A stretch of 63,456 bases of DNA, the filler included, from Ministeria vibrans ATCC 50519 (taxonomy: Eukaryota; Protista; Filasterea): the NCBI GenBank assembly GCA_943704425.1. It is 17 parts of 17 records of this genome, joined end to end, with 100 filler letters (N's around TTAATTAATTAA, not from the genome) between each part and the next. Parts side by side here need not be neighbours in the genome. Positions count along the whole stretch, not along the records: positions 36,158 to 53,548 come from CALSCP010001025.1; 16 more parts are not named here. The stretch is one strand, 5' to 3'. How positions within the stretch are numbered: the first letter of the stretch is position 1; the number at the start of each line of letters is the position of its first letter. The notes below the pieces were generated by a model. It did no database searches, had not been told where the DNA came from, and saw only the letters and a program-made list of their open reading frames with translations. Below, one piece after another: positions 36,321 to 53,548 of this stretch. The position numbers and the translations under genes are program-made.

Positions 36321-39300
36321 TCACTCTTCTTCTTGGTCTCGCGCCAATCGCAAAAACACTTGCTCCAACGTCGTCATGGAGAACGCATAGTTCTCAATGC
36401 CAAGTCGCGCTCGATTGCTCTCAAGCTACACCAAAAGAATAGAGAGCGGTGAACTGATTATTTATTATCTGGTGCTTTCCATACCTCTCCAAACACCTGC
36501 GACAACAAAATAGGCGCCTCTGGATCGATCGGAATCTCCACGTTGAGACGATCTACCCATTGTTCAGTAACGCGCAGTGCAGGAAAGAGACTCTGCACAA
36601 AGGCGAGTGTCTCCGCGACATTGCTTGCTATATAAAAAGACACAATCAGATCAACACAAGACAAATATAATATAGCTGCGCGCACCAGTGATTTCTAGCT
36701 GATAGCCATTCCCGTGTGTCATTTTGAGCTCGCGGGAGGTACCAATGCACTGGAGGCGGCCATTGACAAGGATGCCCACGACGGACGAGAGGGCATCCGC
36801 CTCTTCCATCGAGTGAGTCGTGAGAATAGCCGCACGATCGTAGGCGGTGCCTGCCTGTGACCGCACACTGTTATTGATAGTGCTCCACAGCATCCGCCGC
36901 GCACCGGGATCCATTCCCGTCGACGGCTCGTCTGCAAGACAAAAAAAAAATCACCCGGCTGTCAATCATTTTCCTTTTTCTTCTTGTCATACTGCCCTCA
37001 CTCATCACATACCCATAATGAGCACACGCGGTCCCGACAGGAGACTGATCAGAAAGGAAACCTTTCGTTTTGTTCCACCTATGAATGAGTTAATAATCAT
37101 TAGAAAAACAGTGTCAAAACAACTGTCGCAGTCTCACCCGACAATTTGTGCACTCGGACATCTTTCCAGGCAAACAGCTTCATTGAATCGATGGCGGCGG
37201 CAACACGACGTTCGCTCTCGCTGGGCGGAAATCCCTTCAAGCGCAGATACAGATGAAAGATCTCCGAGACAGTGAGATCACCCCAGAGCGCATCAAATTG
37301 AGGACAGAAGCCCAAGTCACTAATGGCCTGCGGGTCTTTGAGTACATTACGCCCGCAGAGAAACGCGTCGCCTTTGCTCTGTGGGTGCAGTCCCGTCAGC
37401 ACCCCAATTGTAGACGTCTTTCCAGAGCCATTGGGACCCAACAGCCCAAACACCTATGAACATACCATTCGTTTTATTAATTCAAAGCAGCCCGCCAAAT
37501 CGACACCAAATTTCTCGACTTTGTACCTCTCCGTTTGGAATGCTCAGGTTCAGATCGGCGACGGCCATCTTGCCAATGCCCATAGATTTTGTGGCACACA
37601 GACGCGAGAGACATCCCCCACCGCCGGGACTGGTGCTGCGGCCCTTAACATAGTGCTTCTGTAGTCCCTTGACGTACACATATGCGTCGTTGGGCGTCGT
37701 CTCGTTCACTTTCGCCCGCTCCTGTGCGACATCTTCGGGTTCGGCCACAGGTTCCAGTGTGCGTGATTCGCCTTCGCTTGCCCGCCGCGGTCGCACAATT
37801 TCAATGAAGTACAGAAAGAACTACGAGGAGATAGAGGAGATAGAGAGAAACAAAGGATAGAAAGAGGGAGACATAAAACGATAGAAAGAGAGAGACACAC
37901 ACAAAGTGATAGACAGAAAAAAACAGAGGATAGAAAGAGAGAGACATAAAACGATAGAAAGAGAGAGACACACACAAAGTGATAGAAAAAAACAAAGGAT
38001 AGAAAAAAAGACACAAAATAAGATAGAACGAAAGAGAGAAACAAAGGAACAAAGGATAAGTCGGGTGAGAAGTGAGGAAGAGGAAGGTGACGAGCGGCTT
38101 ACGGCGTATATGATGCCTTGGCCGAGAGTAAGCAGCATGGTCGGCATAATAATGTTAGCGGGGTCCCAATAGTCGGCAGCGGTAGGACGCTGAGGCGGGA
38201 AGGTCGTAAGTAGTTTGGTAAGGTTGAGCTGGGTGAAGTAGAAGAGAGTGCCGAAAATGACGTAGGGCGGATCGATGACGCAGAAGACGTAGTGGAGAAT
38301 CATGGCGATGTGAGGGGAACCGGTCATGGCGAGGGGCGCAATGAAGGAGAAAGGGATGATGCCCAGGATGTTGACGAGGGGCGGGTAGGTGGTCTGGGCG
38401 GTGGCGGCTGTCTTGAAGGCACTGCTCAGCACATACGAAAATAGAGTCATCATGAAGACGTAGAGCAGCATCGCCACAATGAGAGGAAACACAGCGGCAC
38501 CCAGGAACGCCTTGATGTTGAAAGCAGCCGCGAGAATGGGCACACTTAGTGCCGTGACCATGTACCCAAGGACGTGTGTAGCAAAGAAGCTGCCCCAGTA
38601 CGTGACGGTGGTGGCACCCGCGATGCGCAGCTGATGGCGCAGGCCAAGCTCGCGGTCCGCCACGACCTCAATGAGGAAGCCGCTGGGAACCACCGAGAGT
38701 GCTGTGCCCATCAGGAAAATAGCGCCAAAGCTGGAGCCGTCAAAGTAGTCGGTGGTCTTGAAGGGAAGCGGGTCACTTGAGGCCATGATAGACGCCGTGC
38801 CGTTTGCGCCGGTAACGGATGCAACACTGGCAAACCAGGCAGATATTAGGGCGCCTGTGAGGGCTGGCATGGCGTGAATCATGGTGTCGTTGTAGGTGAG
38901 GGTGAAAGCAAGAGATGGGGCGGTCGCAGAAGCGTCGAGTGAGGTGACAGTCACGCCACCAATGTGATTGATCGAGGGGACTGCGTCGGGCGAAACAAGA
39001 CATGATGACATAGGGCCCGCTTCGCCGGGACACGCCGTGACCGGGTAGCTCAGGTGTGAGAGGAGAGGCGAGAGCGACCCACTAGTGCTGTTGAGAAACA
39101 TGAACGAGTTGGCCTGGTCATTGTACAGGGCAGCAGGATCGAGTGCGACGGGGCTCTGTGTGGACGGAGATGGAGTCGTTGACGAGCTGATGGCCAGGCC
39201 AACGATCATGAGCACAATGGGCACAATGTAGCGAAAGGTCATGAGGCGACCGTTGCGGACGGAGACGAGGCTACGGGCGTGCACGAGCGGCGCCATGAGC

Positions 39301-42056
39301 TGCCACTGCGACATGGTCTTGAGGTAACCCGGCGGCGGAGGCGAGAAGGCCAGCTGAGCGGCATGAGGCACGTCCATGGGCACTCGCACGTCGTCCATAA
39401 GGGGCTGTCGCTCGGACGGCAACGAACTACTTTTGACGGTGGGTGTTGTTGAGAGGGGTGCAGAGCTGCTGGTGATTGACGAGACGGCCTCGGCGGCTTC
39501 ATCGGCGTCGCTTGCACTCGCTTCGCCCTCGAGCTTGAGAAAGACCTCCTCGAGAGTGGTCGAGGCAATGCCAAAGTCACGGATGCCGAGGGAAACTCGA
39601 TTGTCCTCGAGGTGCGCAAAGAAGGAGGGGAAAGAGCGAAGTGCGGTGAGCGGGAGCATGTAGTGGGCATCTTCACTGCCCACACGCACACACTCAGCAG
39701 AGGGCATGACGCCCTTGATGGACGCGTCGACGGCACTCGCGTCAAAGTTTCTGTCTTTGCTCACTTGCAAGTGGTACCCAATGCCAAATGTGTTCTTGAG
39801 AAACAGAGATGTGCCCTCGCACAACACCTTGCCTTTGTGCAGTACAGCCTTGCGATGTGCCAAAATGTCTGCCTATACACACACAAAAAAGGATAATTAA
39901 TAATAATAACAAAATAATATTATAATAATAAAAATTATTATTAATAATTATTATTATTATTATCAATGGAGCATACCTCATCCATAAAGTGAGTGCAGAG
40001 AAGAGTGACACGCTGGTCGTGCTGTGCGCGCAAGAGAGTCCACATGCGACGGCGCGAGACGGGGTCCATTCCGGCAGTGGGCTCGTCCAAAACGAGAATT
40101 TTGGGGTCGCCAACCAGGGCAATGGCAACGCTGAGCTTGCGCTTCTGTCCGCCACTGAGCGACTCGGCAAAGGAATCCTTTTCGCCAATGAGGTCGACGG
40201 AGCGCACTAGGTCATTCATGCGCTGATCAACAAGGGCAATGGGAACGCCTTTGATGCCAGCGTACAGCTCAATGTGCTCGACGACCGTAAGGTTGGGGTA
40301 CAGGATGTCGTGCTGCGGACACACACCCATGCTCGCGCGGATGTCCTCCATTTGCGTCTCCACGTCGTACCCGAGCACACTTGCTCCGCCACTCGTGGGT
40401 GGCACAAACCCCGACAGAATGGAGAAGAGGGTCGTCTTGCCTGCGCCATTGTGACCCAGCAGCGCAAAGATCTCGCCCATGCCCACGTGCAGCGACACGC
40501 CATTGAGTGCAGCCGTCTCGCTGCGCGGGTACACCTTGGTGAGTCCATTAATGACAATCGCCGGCCCTGATCCGTTGGCGACCGACGACGATGCGACGAG
40601 CAGCTCCGCACCGCCATCGTCGCCAAGAGCGGTATAGCCGGCGGGAGAGCCGCTGATGGAGCGACCCTTGCTGCTGCTACTGCTGCTGCTGCTACTCGAC
40701 TTGGGTTGGGTGCCGCAACCGAGGAAGAAAAGGGGGTGCTTGCGGGAGCCAAAGGGACCCGGAACAACCGCATCGAGGTACATGGCAAGGAGAAAGTATA
40801 TGAGAGCGTCCACAAGACACATGATCATGACGCTGGCTGCGGAGAAGTCGCCGTCACCAATGTTGCTAAATTGCAGGCCCACGCCGCGCGTTTCGTAGTC
40901 GGTGACGATGCCAAAGCCAAGGGAGATGGCAGTGGGGGAGATGAGGGAGACTCCCCAGTAGGTCGCAAGGGACGCGCCACCATTGAGCGAGATGGGCAAG
41001 TAGGCGAGGGACGGGATGATGTTAACGAGGCCGCCGAGGCTGGTAGCCGTCGTGGCCTTGCTGAAAAAGGGCGTGAGCATAAAGGCAAAGCCGATGAGGC
41101 TGAGGCCGTAACAGTAGAGCATGAGGAAGATGAGGAAGACGTTGGAGTGCGCCAAGAGCTGCGTGAGACGCGCCACGACGGCCATGATGAGCACTACAAC
41201 GCCAATGATGACAGTGTACGTGAGGAACCACGAGAGCCAGAGGGTCACCGGACGCAGACCCATCATCAGCATGCCCTCTTTGATGCGGTTCTCCTTCTCC
41301 AGCACAATGCTCATGAGTAGGAAGGTCATGAGCGGCGACATGGCCAGCACCATGTAGATGCCCACAATCGTTTCAAAGCCGGCGTTGATGTCGACAAACG
41401 GGGGCAGGGGTGCCTGTTGCAGGTCAATGCTGAGTGACGGGGTGCTCGTCATCGACGGGACACTTGACTGCATGATGCTCAGATCGAGTGCCGACTGGAG
41501 CGCCATAAACCCCGACAGATAGTAGTTTGACGTGGTGCACGAGTACTGCGACAGCGGGTTGCTGCTGCCGCGACAGCTGGCGAGCGACGAGGTGCGCTGC
41601 GACGTGGAGGGAACGTCGCTCCCGACAATGCGAATATCGTATGCCCACTCTTGCTGGACAGTCGGCGAGGAGGGCACCTGCGTGAAGATCACGCCCGAGA
41701 AGTAGGCAGACGGCTCAAGCAGGTAGCTCGTGGTGAAGTCGGCGTCGCTGGCGAAGCCCTGCAGCGAGTCGGTGCCGTTGAGCATGCCGAGCGAGAGAGC
41801 GACGCGCGCCATCACCCGCGCCGTCTGCGTCGTGTTGGGCGCGAACGCAAGCAGCCGCGATGTCTCAACCCTCGCCGACGCGGACAGTGGGGTCGCTGCA
41901 GACGCCGGCTGCTCCTGGTAGTTGGTGGGCTGGAAGGCTGCTTTCACTGCAAACGGTGTTGTGTAAAATTCCCCACCACACTGAGAGGTACTGTGTTGAC
42001 TTACTGCCCACCAAGAAGAGAACAAACATGATCGGAAAGAGAATCTCGCGCATAAG
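36321..42056 (-). CDS. ABCA-family full-length lipid transporter (TMD-NBD-TMD-NBD); 5' end lies in the N gap
   Basis: EKENRIKEGMLMMGL; NBD1 LLGHNGAGKTT, GVCPQHDIL, LSGGQKRKLS and LDEPTAGMDP; TTLEEVFL; NBD2 GLLGPNGSGKTS and TTHSMEEADAL; C-terminal TTLEQVFL. Confidence 0.96.
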
Positions 42057-43073
42057 CTAGAAGCAAGCGGGTGGGTGGAAGGAGGGGCGGGGGCGNNNNN
42101 NNNNNNNNNNNNNNNNNNNNNNNNNNNNNNNNNNNNNNNNNNNNNNNNNNNNNNNNNNNNNNNNNNNNNNNNNNNNNNNNNNNNNNNNNNNNNNNNNNNN
42201 NNNNNNNNNNNNNNNNNNNNNNNNNNNNNNNNNNNNNNNNNNNNNNNNNNNNNNNNNNNNNNNNNNNNNNNNNNNNNNNNNNNNNNNNNNNNNNNNNNNN
42301 NNNNNNNNNNNNNNNNNNNNNNNNNNNNNNNNNNNNNNNNNNNNNNNNNNNNNNNNNNNNNNNNNNNNNNNNNNNNNNNNNNNNNNNNNNNNNNNNNNNN
42401 NNNNNNNNNNNNNNNNNNNNNNNNNNNNNNNNNNNNNNNNNNNNNNNNNNNNNNNNNNNNNNNNNNNNNNNNNNNNNNNNNNNNNNNNNNNNNNNNNNNN
42501 NNNNNNNNNNNNNNNNNNNNNNNNNNNNNNNNNNNNNNNNNNNNNNNNNNNNNNNNNNNNNNNNNNNNNNNNNNNNNNNNNNNNNNNNNNNNNNNNNNNN
42601 NNNNNNNNNNNNNNNNNNNNNNNNNNNNNNNNNNNNNNNNNNNNNNNNNNNNNNNNNNNNNNNNNNNNNNNNNNNNNNNNNNNNNNNNNNNNNNNNNNNN
42701 NNNNNNNNNNNNNNNNNNNNNNNNNNNNNNNNNNNNNNNNNNNNNNNNNNNNNNNNNNNNNNNNNNNNNNNNNNNNNNNNNNNNNNNNNNNNNNNNNNNN
42801 NNNNNNNNNNNNNNNNNNNNNNNNNNNNNNNNNNNNNNNNNNNNNNNNNNNNNNNNNNNNNNNNNNNNNNNNNNNNNNNNNNNNNNNNNNNNNNNNNNNN
42901 NNNNNNNNNNNNNNNNNNNNNNNNNNNNNNNNNNNNNGGGGGGAGAGAAAGGAACAAAGTGAGAGAGAGAGAGAGTAGAAAGAAACAAAGTGATAGAAAG
43001 AGGGGAAAGAAACAAAGTGAAAGAGAGAGAGAGAGGAGAGAACGAAAGGAAGTAATAGAGAGAGTATCACCCG

Positions 43074-43118
<45 letters not shown>

Positions 43119-46843: not shown

Positions 46844-48026
46844 ATGCAAAAGATTGACAAGTTTGCCGACTTTGGGCGGAAGATTGTGGCGATTGGACGC
46901 AACTATTCGTGAGAAGAAGAGCAAAGAGGGAATGAGTGGGCTCTCGCGCGACTGATGTGTCTCACAGGGAGCATGCCAAGGAGCTGAGCAACCCCGTGCC
47001 CTCCAAGCCCTTCTACTTTCTCAAGCCCACGTCATCCTACTTGAAAGAGGGCTCTGCGATCCGTGTGCCGCTGGGGAGCGATGTGCATCACGAAGGTACA
47101 CAATGCACAATGCACAATGCACTATTCTGCTTCTGACTTGGTGTGCCTGCAGTTGAGCTGGGCGTCGTCATTGGCAAGAAGGGTACACCGCACACATGAG
47201 CACACGGCGCCATCAAGAAGACCACACTCGATTGACACACACATGCACACATACACAACACAAGACACACTCAGCACTCACTCACTCACTCACTCACTCA
47301 CCCACTCACACACACACTCACACACACACACACACACACACACTCACTTACTCACACTCACACACTTACCACGCACTCACTCACTCACTCACACACTTAC
47401 CACGCACTCACTCACTCACACACACTTACCACGCACTCACTCACTCATTCGTTCACTCTGTCTCTCACACACAGGGTTCAACATTAGCGAGTCGGACGCC
47501 ATGGACTACGTCGCAGGGTACGCACTGTCACTTGACATGACCGCGCGCGATGCGCAGGTATCGCCTCTTTGCTTACATGCACCCTCTGACCCACACGCAC
47601 ACTTGCACACGCAGAGTGCGGCCAAGGAGAAGCGACTTCCCTGGTCCATGGCCAAGGGATGTGACACCTTTGCTCCCATTGGCCCCTTCATTCCGTGCGA
47701 CCGCGTTTCCGATCCTCATAATCTTGACATTTGGCTCAAGGTACATGCCAGTGCGCCCGTTCATCTCTTAATAGCTTTTTTGTAGGTCAATGATGAAATG
47801 AAACAGAATGGAAACACCAAGGATATGATTTTCAGGTGGGAATGTTTTTCTTTTTGAGAGTGGGAACTGACCATTGGTCTGATTATGTATAGAATTCCGG
47901 CTCTGATTTCGTTTATTTCTCAGTCAATGACACTGGAAGAAGGAGATCTCATTATGACTGGTTCGTCTTAATATAGTTTACATCCATTCTCTCTCTCTAT
48001 CTCTCTATCACTTTGTTTCTTTCTCC

Positions 48027-48233: not shown

Positions 48234-48304
<71 letters not shown>

Positions 48305-48384
48305 CTCTCGTTGTCTCTTCACTAGGTTTGTCTGATCTAAGTGAATTGCGCTTTTTGGTTGAAAGTGGAATCGCCCTCCCTTAA
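46844..48384 (+). CDS. FAHD1: Fumarylacetoacetate hydrolase domain protein 1 (acylpyruvase/oxaloacetate decarboxylase), multi-exon
   Basis: KIVAIGRNYSEHAKEL, FLKPTSSY, HHEVELGVVIGK, ALSLDMTARD, PWSMAKGCDTF and TLEEGDLIMTGTPSGVG. Confidence 0.95.
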
Positions 48385-48557: not shown

Positions 48558-49578
48558 TCACAACTTCTCAGGTCCAAATTGGTCTTTACAGCGCAATAGA
48601 AACGAGTCCATCATTCGATTTGCAACTGGTGAGAATACTGATTCAATGGCCTAACACAAAAACAGAGTGAGTGTGATCATGCAACACGCTCAAGTGTCAT
48701 TCATTCCAAATACCATTTGATGAGCGGTCGACTGAAACGCAAATGTAATTGAAAAACGCACTTGACATGTTTGTGATCCGTTGACAGAGACGGACGGACG
48801 AAAATGCCAAAGAGTAGTGAGGTGAGAGAACACTGAGGAGTCGGTTGCACTCGCCTGCGCGACAATGGTTGGAATCAGTGCATCATCGATTATTACGTCC
48901 TGTCTTACTTTGATGGAACGGTTTGGACTGAGTTGCACCAGTGATGTGTACTCGGTGGAGAATGGAGGAAAGCCAATGGCCAGACGAGCACGCAGTGTTT
49001 GCGGTGTGGATTGGACTACTTTGGATTCCTGTTCAAGTGAGCGAACAGAGAGAGGAGAAAGAAACAAAGTGATAGAGAGAGGCAAAGTGATAGAGAGAGA
49101 GACAAATTAATAGAGAGAGAGGAGAAAGTGATAGAGAGAGAGGAGAAAGAAACAAAGTGAGTGAGTGCTGAGTCAGTGCGCCCGTTGCGATCTCACCCGC
49201 ACCCACGGAAGAAAGTCGCCGTAGTGCTCAACATCAGCAACAACGCTAAACACTTGCTCGGGAGTGTAGCCGACGTGGCGCTACGAGAACAGAGACTGGC
49301 ATGAGAGCGAGAACACGCGAGACGGGTCTGACACAAGTGCGACACAAGTGCGCGATTCAGTCAGACTGTCCCTCTGCCGCTACCTGCTCTCGAAACGTCG
49401 TTTGGCCGTCCACTGAAGGACTTAGGGTTGAAAAAATACCCCCGAAGGAGCGGACAGGCTGCTGGGTGGCGCGTTTGGCGAAGGGGAGGGCAACACGGTT
49501 TGGCGACGGAAATGCACTTCGCAATGCGACACTTCGTATTAATCGACCAGACAACGTGGTGGCGCGCAGTGCATACAT
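48558..49578 (-). CDS. COQ10: Coenzyme Q-binding protein COQ10 (START domain) with a mitochondrial presequence
   Basis: Arg/Ser-rich presequence; YTPEQVFSVVADVEHYGDFLPW, LAIGFPPFSTEYTSLV and VFSHLTTLWHF. Confidence 0.92.
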
Positions 49579-49939: not shown

Positions 49940-52900
49940 TCATGGGCTGGGCGCAGGGGCAGCGGTAGCGACGGGGGCAGAGGCCACACCACTGCCAGTG
50001 CGGTACAGCAGAATGTCACCGTCGTTGAGAGTGTCGTGCCACCTTCTCCAAATGCGACCTAGTAACAGTGCTTGCAACTGATCAACCGCAGTGGAGGCTA
50101 AGCTCTGAAGACGAGACCTCAGATCGCGCACAGAGATGACAGACTCGCCAGCCTCAAACACCTCTGCCTTCGGACCCAGTGCGCGCACCAGCAGTGCTGT
50201 CAGCTTTGTCTGCGACTTGTCGTCCGTCGTGTATCCCTTGTCGTCAGGCAGTGAGCTCGCCAGGACCTGGCGTGCATACCCAACACGAGGTGCATCCAAC
50301 TGTGGGCCAATGTCGTCCTTGACCAGCGCACCCGAATTGCAAAAGTCGCAAATGACGAGCACATTGCACCCGTTCCACGATACGTGTCCCTCAAGAATAC
50401 CCCTGAGGTTCGTCAAATTGAAACACGATCGCTTGTCGTCCGGGGTCTCAATAGCATTGCTCAGCACCAGTCCCCCGCGACCATCACTCACGCCATGCCC
50501 AATCAGATGCACAACCAGCACTGATGTTCGGCCGAGCAGGTCAGCCTCCTCAGCGAGCTCAAATGCCGCTTCTTTGATCCGCTCCTCCGTGACTTCCACC
50601 CACCCACCCGCCGGGTCCACATCCGACACTGAGCGCACACTAAACTTGCGCTGTTTCCACATGTCAGACACGAGTGTGACACTGTGCGCCACTCCAGGAA
50701 GGTCGGCATACTTCTTCAGCGGCTTGCGCTTCGTGCTCTTGTACTTGCTCACCCCCACCACCAGCGCACCCGCGTACGAGTAGTTGGCAGGAAGGACCAC
50801 ATCTGCAAAAACGACGTGTTACATGCTCATCATCTGAACGTCATCTCAACTAATTGTTCTCTTACTCTTCCGCTGAGTGCACACCCACCACTCCTCCAGT
50901 CGCTCATTGCACACACGCACACTGCAACTGTGCTTAGACATCTCCCCACGCACGAAGTCACTTTGTCGGTGCTTCTCACTCGCGTGTGCCACACTCTCTG
51001 GTGCAAACAGTGGTGCGTTGCTCTCGAATGGATGCGCCGGCACAACAACCGGCGTGCCCCGCCAGCCCCACCGCAGCGAACGAGTCCCGTCGCACACCGC
51101 CCCGCAGATGCGATTCACAGTGCGCTGCACTCGCTCCGGATCACTGTCGTCCGTCAACTCCATGCGCACAAACGACTCCGTCGCGTTCAGTCGCAGTCGC
51201 ACGGGAACACACCCGTCCAGTCGCATTGCACTTGTGCATCGCTGTGTCGCACAGATGGGACTGTCGAGCAAGGACGCACGCCACAGTGACACCATCAGTA
51301 GGTGGAACGTCGCGAGGGAAACAGGAAGCATCTCCGAGGTGCTGGCAAACTGGTAGAGGAACAGCTGAACGGGAAAATGAGCGGGTGTGTCGAGGAAGGG
51401 TGCGTGGTCAGGCAGAAGCATAGGCACAAACAGGTGCTTGTCACGGCGCAGCACAAGGCTCAGTCGCTCAAGACAGAGCATAAACGCAGACACGTCCGTC
51501 ACATCGGCGCCAGCAAGAAGAGGAATGAGCTCGGGCTGGGGAGGAGGAACGCCGATGAGTTTGCGAACAAACTTCTCAAACAGCGTGGGTTCCTTGGGGG
51601 TGGCTTCGCTTGGAGCAACCATCAACTGACTGGCTCGCGTGGACGCTGCAGTCCACACAAGCCATTCGGCCGCCTCAACGGGAAATCCACATTCTGAAGC
51701 GTCTTTGCACCGGTCCAGTTCGCCAAGTAGTCGCGCTGTCCGATCGGCTGCTCCCTCGTCTGGGTGAGACCAACCGGCCTTCTCGACCTCGCGCAGCATC
51801 GCCAGTGCTCGCTTGCTCTTTGCGTGTCCCCACCGTGCCATTACCACCGAACACAACAGCTCCAGTGCGCCAATCAGTCGTGGTACATCAAACACAATCG
51901 TATCCAACTCGCTCACCACCTGACTTGTCGCATCCGCACGACACACCAGAATGTCTGCAGCACTCTCCAGATACGGCACAAGTCCTTCTCGGATTGCACT
52001 CTCAGTCGGCAACATCTCACCGAGTGTCACAAGCGGTTCGTCGTTGAGCTTGAGCGTGTTCAGTGCCCCCACACTCAACATGAGGTCCACCTTGCCCAGT
52101 CGCGCCCACCGTCCAATCAGATCCTGTGCTACGACCAACTCCAGTGGAAGTGTACGCTTCCGCACGGCCTTGTGCATCGCCATGCTCACTGCGGACAGAC
52201 CAAGACGCTTTCGACTGCCCACCTGGAAGAAAGGCACACCGGGAGTGTCGGCTGGCATCAGCAGGTGGCTGCCAAGCACAGTATGGACCAGACGCAGAAC
52301 CTCGCGAGCGACACGCGACAGAAGATCGTCGGGCACTGTATTGTTGGGGAATGTGTCGAGGTGGGAACCCACAATGATGACACGGAAGTACGACTGGTCG
52401 GTGGTGGGCACCTGGTGCGCAATGATGTGCGCCCACTTGGACAGGTGTTCGTACTGTCGTAGAGCCTTGCGTTCAAAGTCCATGACAGACAGGTCAAAAA
52501 CGAGAACGTAGACCGACTCAGAGCCCATGAAAAGAGCTGGAAGCGAGTCGTACATCGACTCACCTGGTAGAAACAGCAATGCGGGATTATACACAAAAAT
52601 TGCATTGTAACGTGACTCACCTGCAAAGTCGAAAGCGTCCATGTCAACATGTTCTTCGCGCAGCTCACCCTCAAGCAGTCCACGCACAAGCGCCATAGTA
52701 GGATTCGCGGTGGTGGCCGCAAGTGGAAGCGGTGCTGTGGGCGGTGGTGACGGAGCGCGGTCACCACTGGTCGACGATGAGGGGCCAGAGGATGGAGACG
52801 GTGCAGTGTGGCGTATGGGAGCAGGAGCAGGTGTGGGTGAGGATGGACGCGATGTCGGTGCTCCTGAAGGACCTGGCGCATCCTCATCTTTCTCACTCGT

Positions 52901-53548
52901 GTCGCCCACCACCACCGTCGGCATCTCCTTCTCTTTCTTCTCTCCAGCTCCATCCGCCAGCACACTTGACAGACGCAGTTCATCAAGTGGCACGGCCTCA
53001 AACACGCCTGTTCCCTTATTCAACACCATTCGCATTTTGTACATGCGAGTCGCCAGTGAGCGGTCCTCCTCGCCCGGCAACTTTTCTCCCCTCAGTGCAG
53101 CCAATAGAGCAGTCTTGCCCGCTTCCGTCGCACCCAAGAACAGCACTTTGATCGACCGACTAATCACTGACCCGCGTGCCAGGGCAGCAGAGAAGGCGAG
53201 GTTGTAAGCAACGGCACTATACAGATTGTCACTCAGTCAATGAAGAGAAATCAAAGGCACTTTCTTTTTCTTACGAAAGAACGTCACGAATAGCCCATTG
53301 CGTGCGATGACCATCTTTAGAGTGCACAAGGAGTGTCTCCCCGTCAGAAGACATTTGAATCATCGCAATTGGACTACACGATATATCATTATTTTGACTC
53401 TGAAGTACAAACAGGAATTGATTCCTCCTTGGTTACCTGTGATTGGCATTGAGTGTTGTGATTTGTGTTCCTTTCGCAATGCTCCGCGCTTTGAGTGTGC
53501 TGTTAGTTGAACCATTAAAAATGGTCTTTCCATCACGAGAGACACACA
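49940..53548 (-). CDS. WD40 - Roc GTPase - COR-like - caspase-like (peptidase C14) fusion protein, multi-exon, 5' truncated
   Basis: WD40 exons (CVSRDGKTIFNGSTNSTLKA...TLNANH; IQMSSDGETLLVHSKDGHRTQW). Roc motifs IKVLFLGATEAGKT, DFAG, SVYVLVFDLS and IIVGSHLD. A phase-1 GT-AG intron at 50803-50865 joins this in frame to ALVVGVSKY...DLPG...HLIGHG...VICDFCNSG. Confidence 0.85.

Follow-up and report, generated by a model that had tools for sequence, protein, structure and literature searches.

Does the filasterean protist Ministeria vibrans ATCC 50519 encode, in a single polypeptide, a WD40 sensor, a Roc-COR GTPase switch and a caspase-like protease? The question is raised by a gene on the minus strand (53548-49940) of a 63,456-nucleotide (nt) stretch of DNA, which consists of 17 parts of genome assembly GCA_943704425.1 joined end to end and is referred to here as the window. 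The gene lies in the part derived from CALSCP010001025.1, and its 5' end is lost at the piece edge at 53548. A first-pass annotation of the window had read it as a single-chain WD40-Roc-COR-caspase fusion and as a candidate GTPase-gated immune or cell-death protease. The predicted single-chain architecture of WD40 repeats, Roc-COR module and C14 peptidase was supported by intron position and phase in six loci as well as by independent domain evidence, and appears very probable. Taken as a whole, the locus is best explained by one nuclear gene that joins these three parts and would give rise to a switch-gated death or immune signal, an explanation that we hold with moderate confidence.

Exon structure and conserved introns

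Two large minus-strand open reading frames (ORFs), which had been reported in the first pass, were recovered at 53167-50846 and 50800-49940 as frames of 773 and 286 amino acids (aa), respectively, separated by a gap of only 45 nt. Script-based joining of five exons across four GT-AG introns of 57 to 63 nt yielded a spliced frame of 1121 open codons with a single terminal stop. Exons were joined only for this stop count and for 17-residue junction contexts, whereas all searches and models were run on single exons or ORFs. In the direction of transcription, all on the minus strand, the partial exon a (53437..53548), which is cut by the piece edge and has an open frame, is separated by intron 1 (53374..53436; 63 nt, GTAACC...TGTAG, phase 2) from exon b (53275..53373), which in turn is followed by intron 2 (53217..53274; 58 nt, GTAAGA...TATAG, phase 2) and exon c (52621..53216). 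The acceptor of intron 2 was placed at 53217 because a conserved AF-x-AA-x-x-RGSV stretch lies in the P-loop exon of paralogs; comparison with paralogs also indicated that the P-loop exon begins upstream of the start of the 773-aa ORF. Intron 3 (52564..52620; 57 nt, GTGAGT...ACCAG, phase 1), between exon c and exon d (50866..52563), is in frame and free of stops, and its removal gives DFAG-ESMYDSL. Intron 4 (50803..50865; 63 nt, GTAAGA...TGCAG, phase 1) contains in-frame stops and connects exon d to exon e (49940..50802), with the junction reading ...TQRK-N-VVLPANY. Both of these introns had been predicted in the first-pass annotation and were found as described there.

Homologs exist solely as pieces on short metagenome contigs. 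One of them, L003, is the same locus as the window (∼97% DNA identity); it carries no changes in either key intron and therefore did not discriminate between exon and intron. Distinct genes are represented by L002 (70% aa identity), by L001, L005, and L006 (55-59% aa identity), and by L004 (40% identity in the protease), which comes from another sample. At the site of intron 3, a phase-1 GT-AG intron of divergent sequence, containing stops, was also present in L001, L002, L005, and L006, and in all loci covering the site it was positioned directly after the first base of the DFAG Gly codon. At the site of intron 4, a phase-1 GT-AG intron of ∼58 to 70 nt was likewise found in these four loci and in L004, in each case between the conserved WW-containing end of COR and the start of the protease domain.

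As a separate observation, intron 3 is stop-free in the window gene, whereas the corresponding introns of paralogs contain stops. If retained, it would add 19 residues directly after DFAG in switch II, which may reflect a regulatory isoform or chance.

Domains of the encoded protein

Exon e encodes a caspase-like C14 peptidase domain, followed by a Pro/Ala-rich tail and the stop codon. The domain matched Pfam Peptidase_C14 (PF00656) with 33.1 bits, compared to a cut-off of 21.4, and more weakly CHAT. The PF00656 match, which was also recorded for the proteins P0009-P0012, spans model positions 4 to 142 of 233, and the domain is short and lacks a separate p10 signature. Both catalytic residues, His102 (in H-L-I-G-H-G, at 50497-50495) and Cys154 (in C-D-F-C-N-S-G with its D-x-C motif, at 50341-50339), were invariant in 8 members. 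Foldseek comparison of an AlphaFold2 (AF2) model of the protease (predicted local distance difference test [pLDDT] of 73.6; predicted template modelling score of 0.81) retrieved 329 PDB matches at E<=1e-3. The top matches comprised the MALT1 paracaspase (best), caspase-4, caspase-9, bacterial GSU0716, and metacaspases, all with a probability of 1.00. Hence, C14 membership is indicated by a family profile above the curated threshold as well as by a His-Cys dyad in a caspase-hemoglobinase fold. In metacaspases and MALT1, the Asp located two residues before the Cys is the S1 acidic residue. Judged from the D-x-C motif only, a preference for basic P1 residues is likelier for the window protein than Asp specificity. 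The caspase effector postulated in the first pass was thus borne out as far as the C14 caspase fold is concerned, but its D-x-C motif looks metacaspase- or paracaspase-like and not like that of an Asp-specific caspase. Within the Pro/Ala-rich tail (49940-50070), L003 carries insertions of 36 nt and 7 nt relative to the window.

The N-terminal half of the putative Roc domain, with P-loop and G3, is encoded by exon c, and its C-terminal half, with G4, by exon d, which continues through a COR-A/COR-B-like region (∼52150-51002) and then a linker. The motifs G1 (GATEAGKT, 53134-53111), G3 (DFAG, 52630-52621, its last codon being split by intron 3) and G4 (GSHLD, 52369-52355) were all found with the sequences given in the first-pass annotation. 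All three are kept in paralogs, the P-loop in L001, L005, and L006. Between switch I and G3, Roc contains a Pro/Ser/Thr-rich low-complexity insert (∼52960-52688), which was disordered in the model. Every member has such an insert of ∼90 to 110 aa, conserved in place but not in sequence. With the insert and intron 3 removed, the residues following DFAG are those of a normal Roc switch II.

Only 6 of 1.84 billion representative proteins were matched in a profile search, and two of these (P0017 and P0018) lie outside the family. P0018 carries Roc. P0017, the closest relative outside the family, is a protein of 1106 aa with a Ras domain, a second Roc-type G domain, COR-A and COR-B under the Pfam cut-offs, and an unannotated tail of ∼240 aa. 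Alignment of the family to this ROCO protein with hhalign (95.5%, E 1.5e-8) extended over 422 columns, from the C-terminal half of Roc through COR-A and COR-B, and matched ORF residues 202-722 to P0017 residues 403-861, within which its COR-A and COR-B Pfam matches lie. Of the ∼430 aa that had been assigned to the COR position in the first pass, ∼380 aa following Roc were aligned with COR-A and COR-B in this way. When the family profile was compared to PDB sequences, LRRK2 Roc domains were the only recurring matches (seven entries, E 0.08-0.9), accompanied by two unrelated single rows (E 0.27 and 2.5).

Structure comparison pointed in the same direction. The AF2 model of the Roc-COR region, with a pLDDT of ∼65 to 89 across most of residues 217-590, had the LRR-Roc-COR protein of C. 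tepidum (Roco) as its top Foldseek match (probability 0.98), albeit with low TM-scores, while NLRC4 and RPP1 appeared only as weak rows (probability 0.06-0.08). In VIA-align, the best 13 chains were all ROCO proteins (Z 7.7-10.5, over approximately model residues 200-599) and ranked ahead of every plain GTPase. They included LRRK1 (8e05; Z 10.5, root mean square deviation 4.3, 270 aligned), LRRK2 (8fo9; Z 9.6), M. barkeri Roco2 (4wnr; Z 9.4) and the C. tepidum protein (6hlu; Z 8.2). In addition, the best named language-model neighbour clusters (Atlas; scores 0.96-0.84) nearly all carried COR-A, Roc, or COR-B. With ROCO proteins ranking top in both structure searches, the Roc/COR fold assumed in the first pass was supported at the level of the model. 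From these sequence and model comparisons, we conclude that the predicted Roc-COR module is very divergent but genuine: a Roc G domain with G1, G3, and G4 appears to be followed directly on its C-terminal side by COR-A and COR-B, as indicated by hhalign, VIA-align, and the Atlas neighbours.

A 33-aa stretch within the COR region (∼51620-51520) was considered as a further intron and rejected, as it is open, differs from L002 by a 3-codon indel, and the length of its candidate GT...AG interval (95 nt) is not divisible by 3. Only the window gene and L002/P0001, the closest relative, carry this coding insertion; seven other members lack it.

Exons a and b probably encode the penultimate and the last blade of a WD40 propeller, both degenerate. 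As predicted in the first pass, they add to the protein in frame (for exon b, by a separate frame check), and in BLASTP both showed homology to the final two L001 blades (exon a, 44% identity, E 7e-8; exon b, 50% identity, E 3e-7). In L001, L005, and L006, several upstream blades matched PF00400 above the cut-off, giving a total of ∼8 blades with roughly one intron each, and L006 apparently begins directly with its ∼8-bladed propeller. The window would therefore hold only the end of the propeller, WD40 being proven only in paralogs. The family architecture of WD40 propeller, Roc, COR, and C14 peptidase thus follows from the blades of paralogs together with the homology of the two window exons.

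Family, proposed mechanism and alternative readings

At least nine distinct genes with 46 to 70% identity were distinguished, several of which share a sample with a 97%-identical copy of the window locus, suggesting paralogous expansion within a single organism or among close relatives. Pattern scans based on the protease alignment, across 185,579 prokaryotic genomes, and on the Roc-COR alignment, across JGI metagenome contigs, detected no relatives. Between the window and L003, 28 synonymous and 27 non-synonymous codon differences were counted, the non-synonymous ones being concentrated in the protease exon (17, versus 15 synonymous). Among paralogs, identity was 44 to 52% in the WD region versus 55 to 61% in Roc-COR, i.e., the former is slightly more divergent, but not hypervariable. 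Downstream of the L001 paralog lies a CAP-Gly gene (L001 5217-5537; PF01302, E 6e-22), which has no counterpart beside the window gene; paralogs therefore reside in different neighbourhoods.

In the mechanism we propose, the propeller would bind a trigger or keep the protein autoinhibited, and Roc-COR would rearrange or dimerise with nucleotide, as in other ROCO proteins. This change might bring together or free the protease domains, which could then cut substrates after basic residues and thereby produce a signal of the cell-death or immune type. The same logic has been predicted for bacterial LRR-AP-GTPase-COR-effector proteins. By analogy, an immune or cell-death role can be assigned tentatively, at slightly less than even chances. 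That a death or immune receptor complete in one chain might be switched by a ROCO GTPase in place of a STAND ATPase, and that the family might form a protist class parallel to NLRs, is more speculative and somewhat doubtful.

Several observations weigh against parts of this reading. The gene model is a prediction from genomic DNA and paralog comparison. The match to Pfam Roc (PF08477; model positions 1-41, 24.7 bits, E 3e-5) stayed below the 27-bit cut-off, exon d gave no Pfam match of any kind, COR-A and COR-B included, and Pfam results for exons c and d singly were weak or empty. Likewise, neither exon a nor exon b had a Pfam WD40 match on its own. Among the domains named in the first pass, Pfam searches hence recovered Peptidase_C14 above its cut-off, and WD40 in paralogs, but not Roc or COR. 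The AF2 model of Roc-COR had a mean pLDDT of 55, and its first 216 residues were not modelled. The differences between the window and L003 point to only moderate constraint, the WD region gives no clear sign of a fast-evolving sensor, and the effector is the same in every paralog, unlike in bacterial systems.

Could the 63-nt gap be intergenic, separating a WD40-Roc-COR gene from an adjacent, separately expressed caspase-like protein? A gene model predicted from genomic DNA and the fact that prokaryotic gene callers split the pieces apart would be compatible with this. However, two independent genes are very unlikely because intron sites and phases are shared, with six loci of 40 to 97% identity carrying a phase-1 GT-AG intron at the corresponding position, and because the second ORF begins only 45 nt after the stop of the first; moreover, a conserved ATG is missing from most protease ORFs. 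It also appears improbable that a Ras-like GTPase is merely joined to an unrelated helical region resembling COR, and that the protein is no true ROCO member. The Pfam results for Roc and COR, the low Foldseek TM-scores, and the fact that the only two outside matches among the 1.84 billion proteins concern the Roc part only would fit such a view, but the hhalign alignment continues through COR-A and COR-B, VIA-align placed the model on the Roc-COR modules of LRRK1 and LRRK2 as well as on those of archaeal and bacterial Roco proteins, ahead of other GTPases, and the Atlas neighbours are COR-A clusters. Least credible of all is that the gene is decaying or encodes a pseudoenzyme whose GTPase or protease does not function: non-synonymous changes versus L003 are fairly frequent relative to synonymous ones and Roc harbours a large low-complexity insert, but every exon is open, and neither the G1, G3, and G4 motifs nor the His/Cys dyad vary among paralogs of 40 to 70% identity.

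A different matter is whether the same architecture might serve a non-immune function, as a regulated signalling or housekeeping protease-scaffold with WD40 as a docking platform, acting either by MALT1-like limited proteolysis or in LRRK-type control of cytoskeleton or trafficking. The WD40 region that is not hypervariable among paralogs, the one effector common to all members, and MALT1 as the best structural match of the protease are in line with such a function, and many ROCO proteins work in trafficking or the cytoskeleton (PMC6337361). We nevertheless consider it rather unlikely, as a paralog-rich, taxonomically very narrow, and fast-diverging family fits conflict genes better, and the nearest architectures on record have been predicted to be conflict systems.

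Several other features were found in the same part of the window. An ABCA-type ABC transporter gene on the minus strand (37821-42050; ABC2_membrane_3 and ABC_tran, each twice), whose first exon apparently ends with a GTAAGT donor near 41995, adjoins an assembly gap of N (42097-42937). On its high-coordinate side, this gap is flanked by simple sequence rich in GA and by a (CA)n microsatellite (∼43076-43115). Between the gap and the gene under study lie an exon of the fumarylacetoacetate-hydrolase family on the plus strand (47063-47785), a (CT)n microsatellite (∼48250-48330), and a COQ10-like exon with START/polyketide-cyclase fold on the minus strand (48690-49085).

Comparison with known systems

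In bacteria, proteins that combine LRR, AP-GTPase (Roc), and COR with a C-terminal effector drawn from a set of at least 24, including caspase, have been predicted to be counter-invader systems (Kaur et al. 2021, eLife, PMC8195603). The layout LRR+AP-GTPase+COR+CASPASE has 36 to 38 text occurrences in two source-data files of that study (PMC8195603; Fig. 6D; e.g., OQX07365.1), in which TIR+BetaPropeller+AP-GTPase and a sea urchin AP-GTPase fused to Death and TRADD-N domains are also catalogued. BetaPropeller+AP-GTPase+COR+CASPASE was not found in its tables, and full-text literature searches returned no paper on a eukaryotic ROCO-caspase. The first-pass statement that the architecture is not known as a characterised system therefore stands for eukaryotes as far as these searches reach, but has to be qualified by the catalogued bacterial LRR version. 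Domain-based surveys would miss the present family because its Roc and COR fall under the Pfam thresholds.

If the proposed reading is true, the gene would offer the first tractable system in which a Roc-COR switch acts directly on an enzyme that is fused to it and is not a kinase. How the nucleotide state of Roc-COR is conveyed to the output domain is still debated for LRRK2, and a protease fusion, with cleavage as read-out, would be an independent test bed. Like LRRK1/LRRK2, DAPK1, Dictyostelium Roco, and Trichoplax ROCO proteins, the window gene has a Roc-COR tandem, probably with WD40 in the same chain; its G4 is of the T/S-H-L-D type, as in LRRK2. Some ROCO proteins are linked to death-fold signalling, and Trichoplax members carrying a CARD or death domain are mentioned in the literature. 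Whereas the described output of eukaryotic ROCO proteins is a kinase or a death-fold/CARD partner, and none is described with a protease, the output domain of the window gene is a caspase-like protease. Moreover, WD40 is C-terminal in LRRKs, but N-terminal in the window gene, which has no LRR.

With its WD40 sensor version, the gene would constitute a GTPase-based counterpart to the apoptosome and NLR-type receptors. It would share the combination of WD40 sensor, nucleotide switch, and caspase-family effector with the Apaf-1 apoptosome and other STAND-WD40 proteins, including bacterial and fungal metacaspase-NACHT-WD40 proteins, which as single chains are widespread in bacteria (PMC3501461). 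It is no STAND protein, however, since the switch is a Ras-like GTPase with COR and not a STAND AAA+ ATPase (NB-ARC/NACHT) as in the apoptosome. Its order is also reversed, with the sensor N-terminal and the protease C-terminal, and there is no CARD or adaptor step. The protease domain shares the caspase-hemoglobinase fold with metacaspases, MALT1, and orthocaspases (C14, clan CD), together with motifs of the His-Gly and D-x-C-x-S-G types, and like them it probably prefers basic residues at P1. It differs from them by its shortness, the missing separate p10 signature, and its fusion to Roc-COR.

The greatest likeness is to the bacterial LRR+AP-GTPase+COR+caspase proteins, which are also single chains with an N-terminal repeat sensor, a Roc-COR switch, and a C-terminal caspase-like effector, occur as multiple paralogs per genome, and for which a conflict or death role is likewise predicted only. 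The bacterial systems are prokaryotic, use LRR as sensor, and vary their effector among paralogs, none of which applies to the window gene: it is eukaryotic, has spliceosomal introns, probably WD40, a constant effector, and a Roc-COR module too divergent for Pfam. The design of repeat sensor, AP-GTPase-COR, and caspase that was predicted for bacteria thus very probably occurs in a eukaryote as well, where it belongs to a native family of genes with introns. The window gene is a eukaryotic, probably WD40-bearing version of this computationally catalogued bacterial layout.

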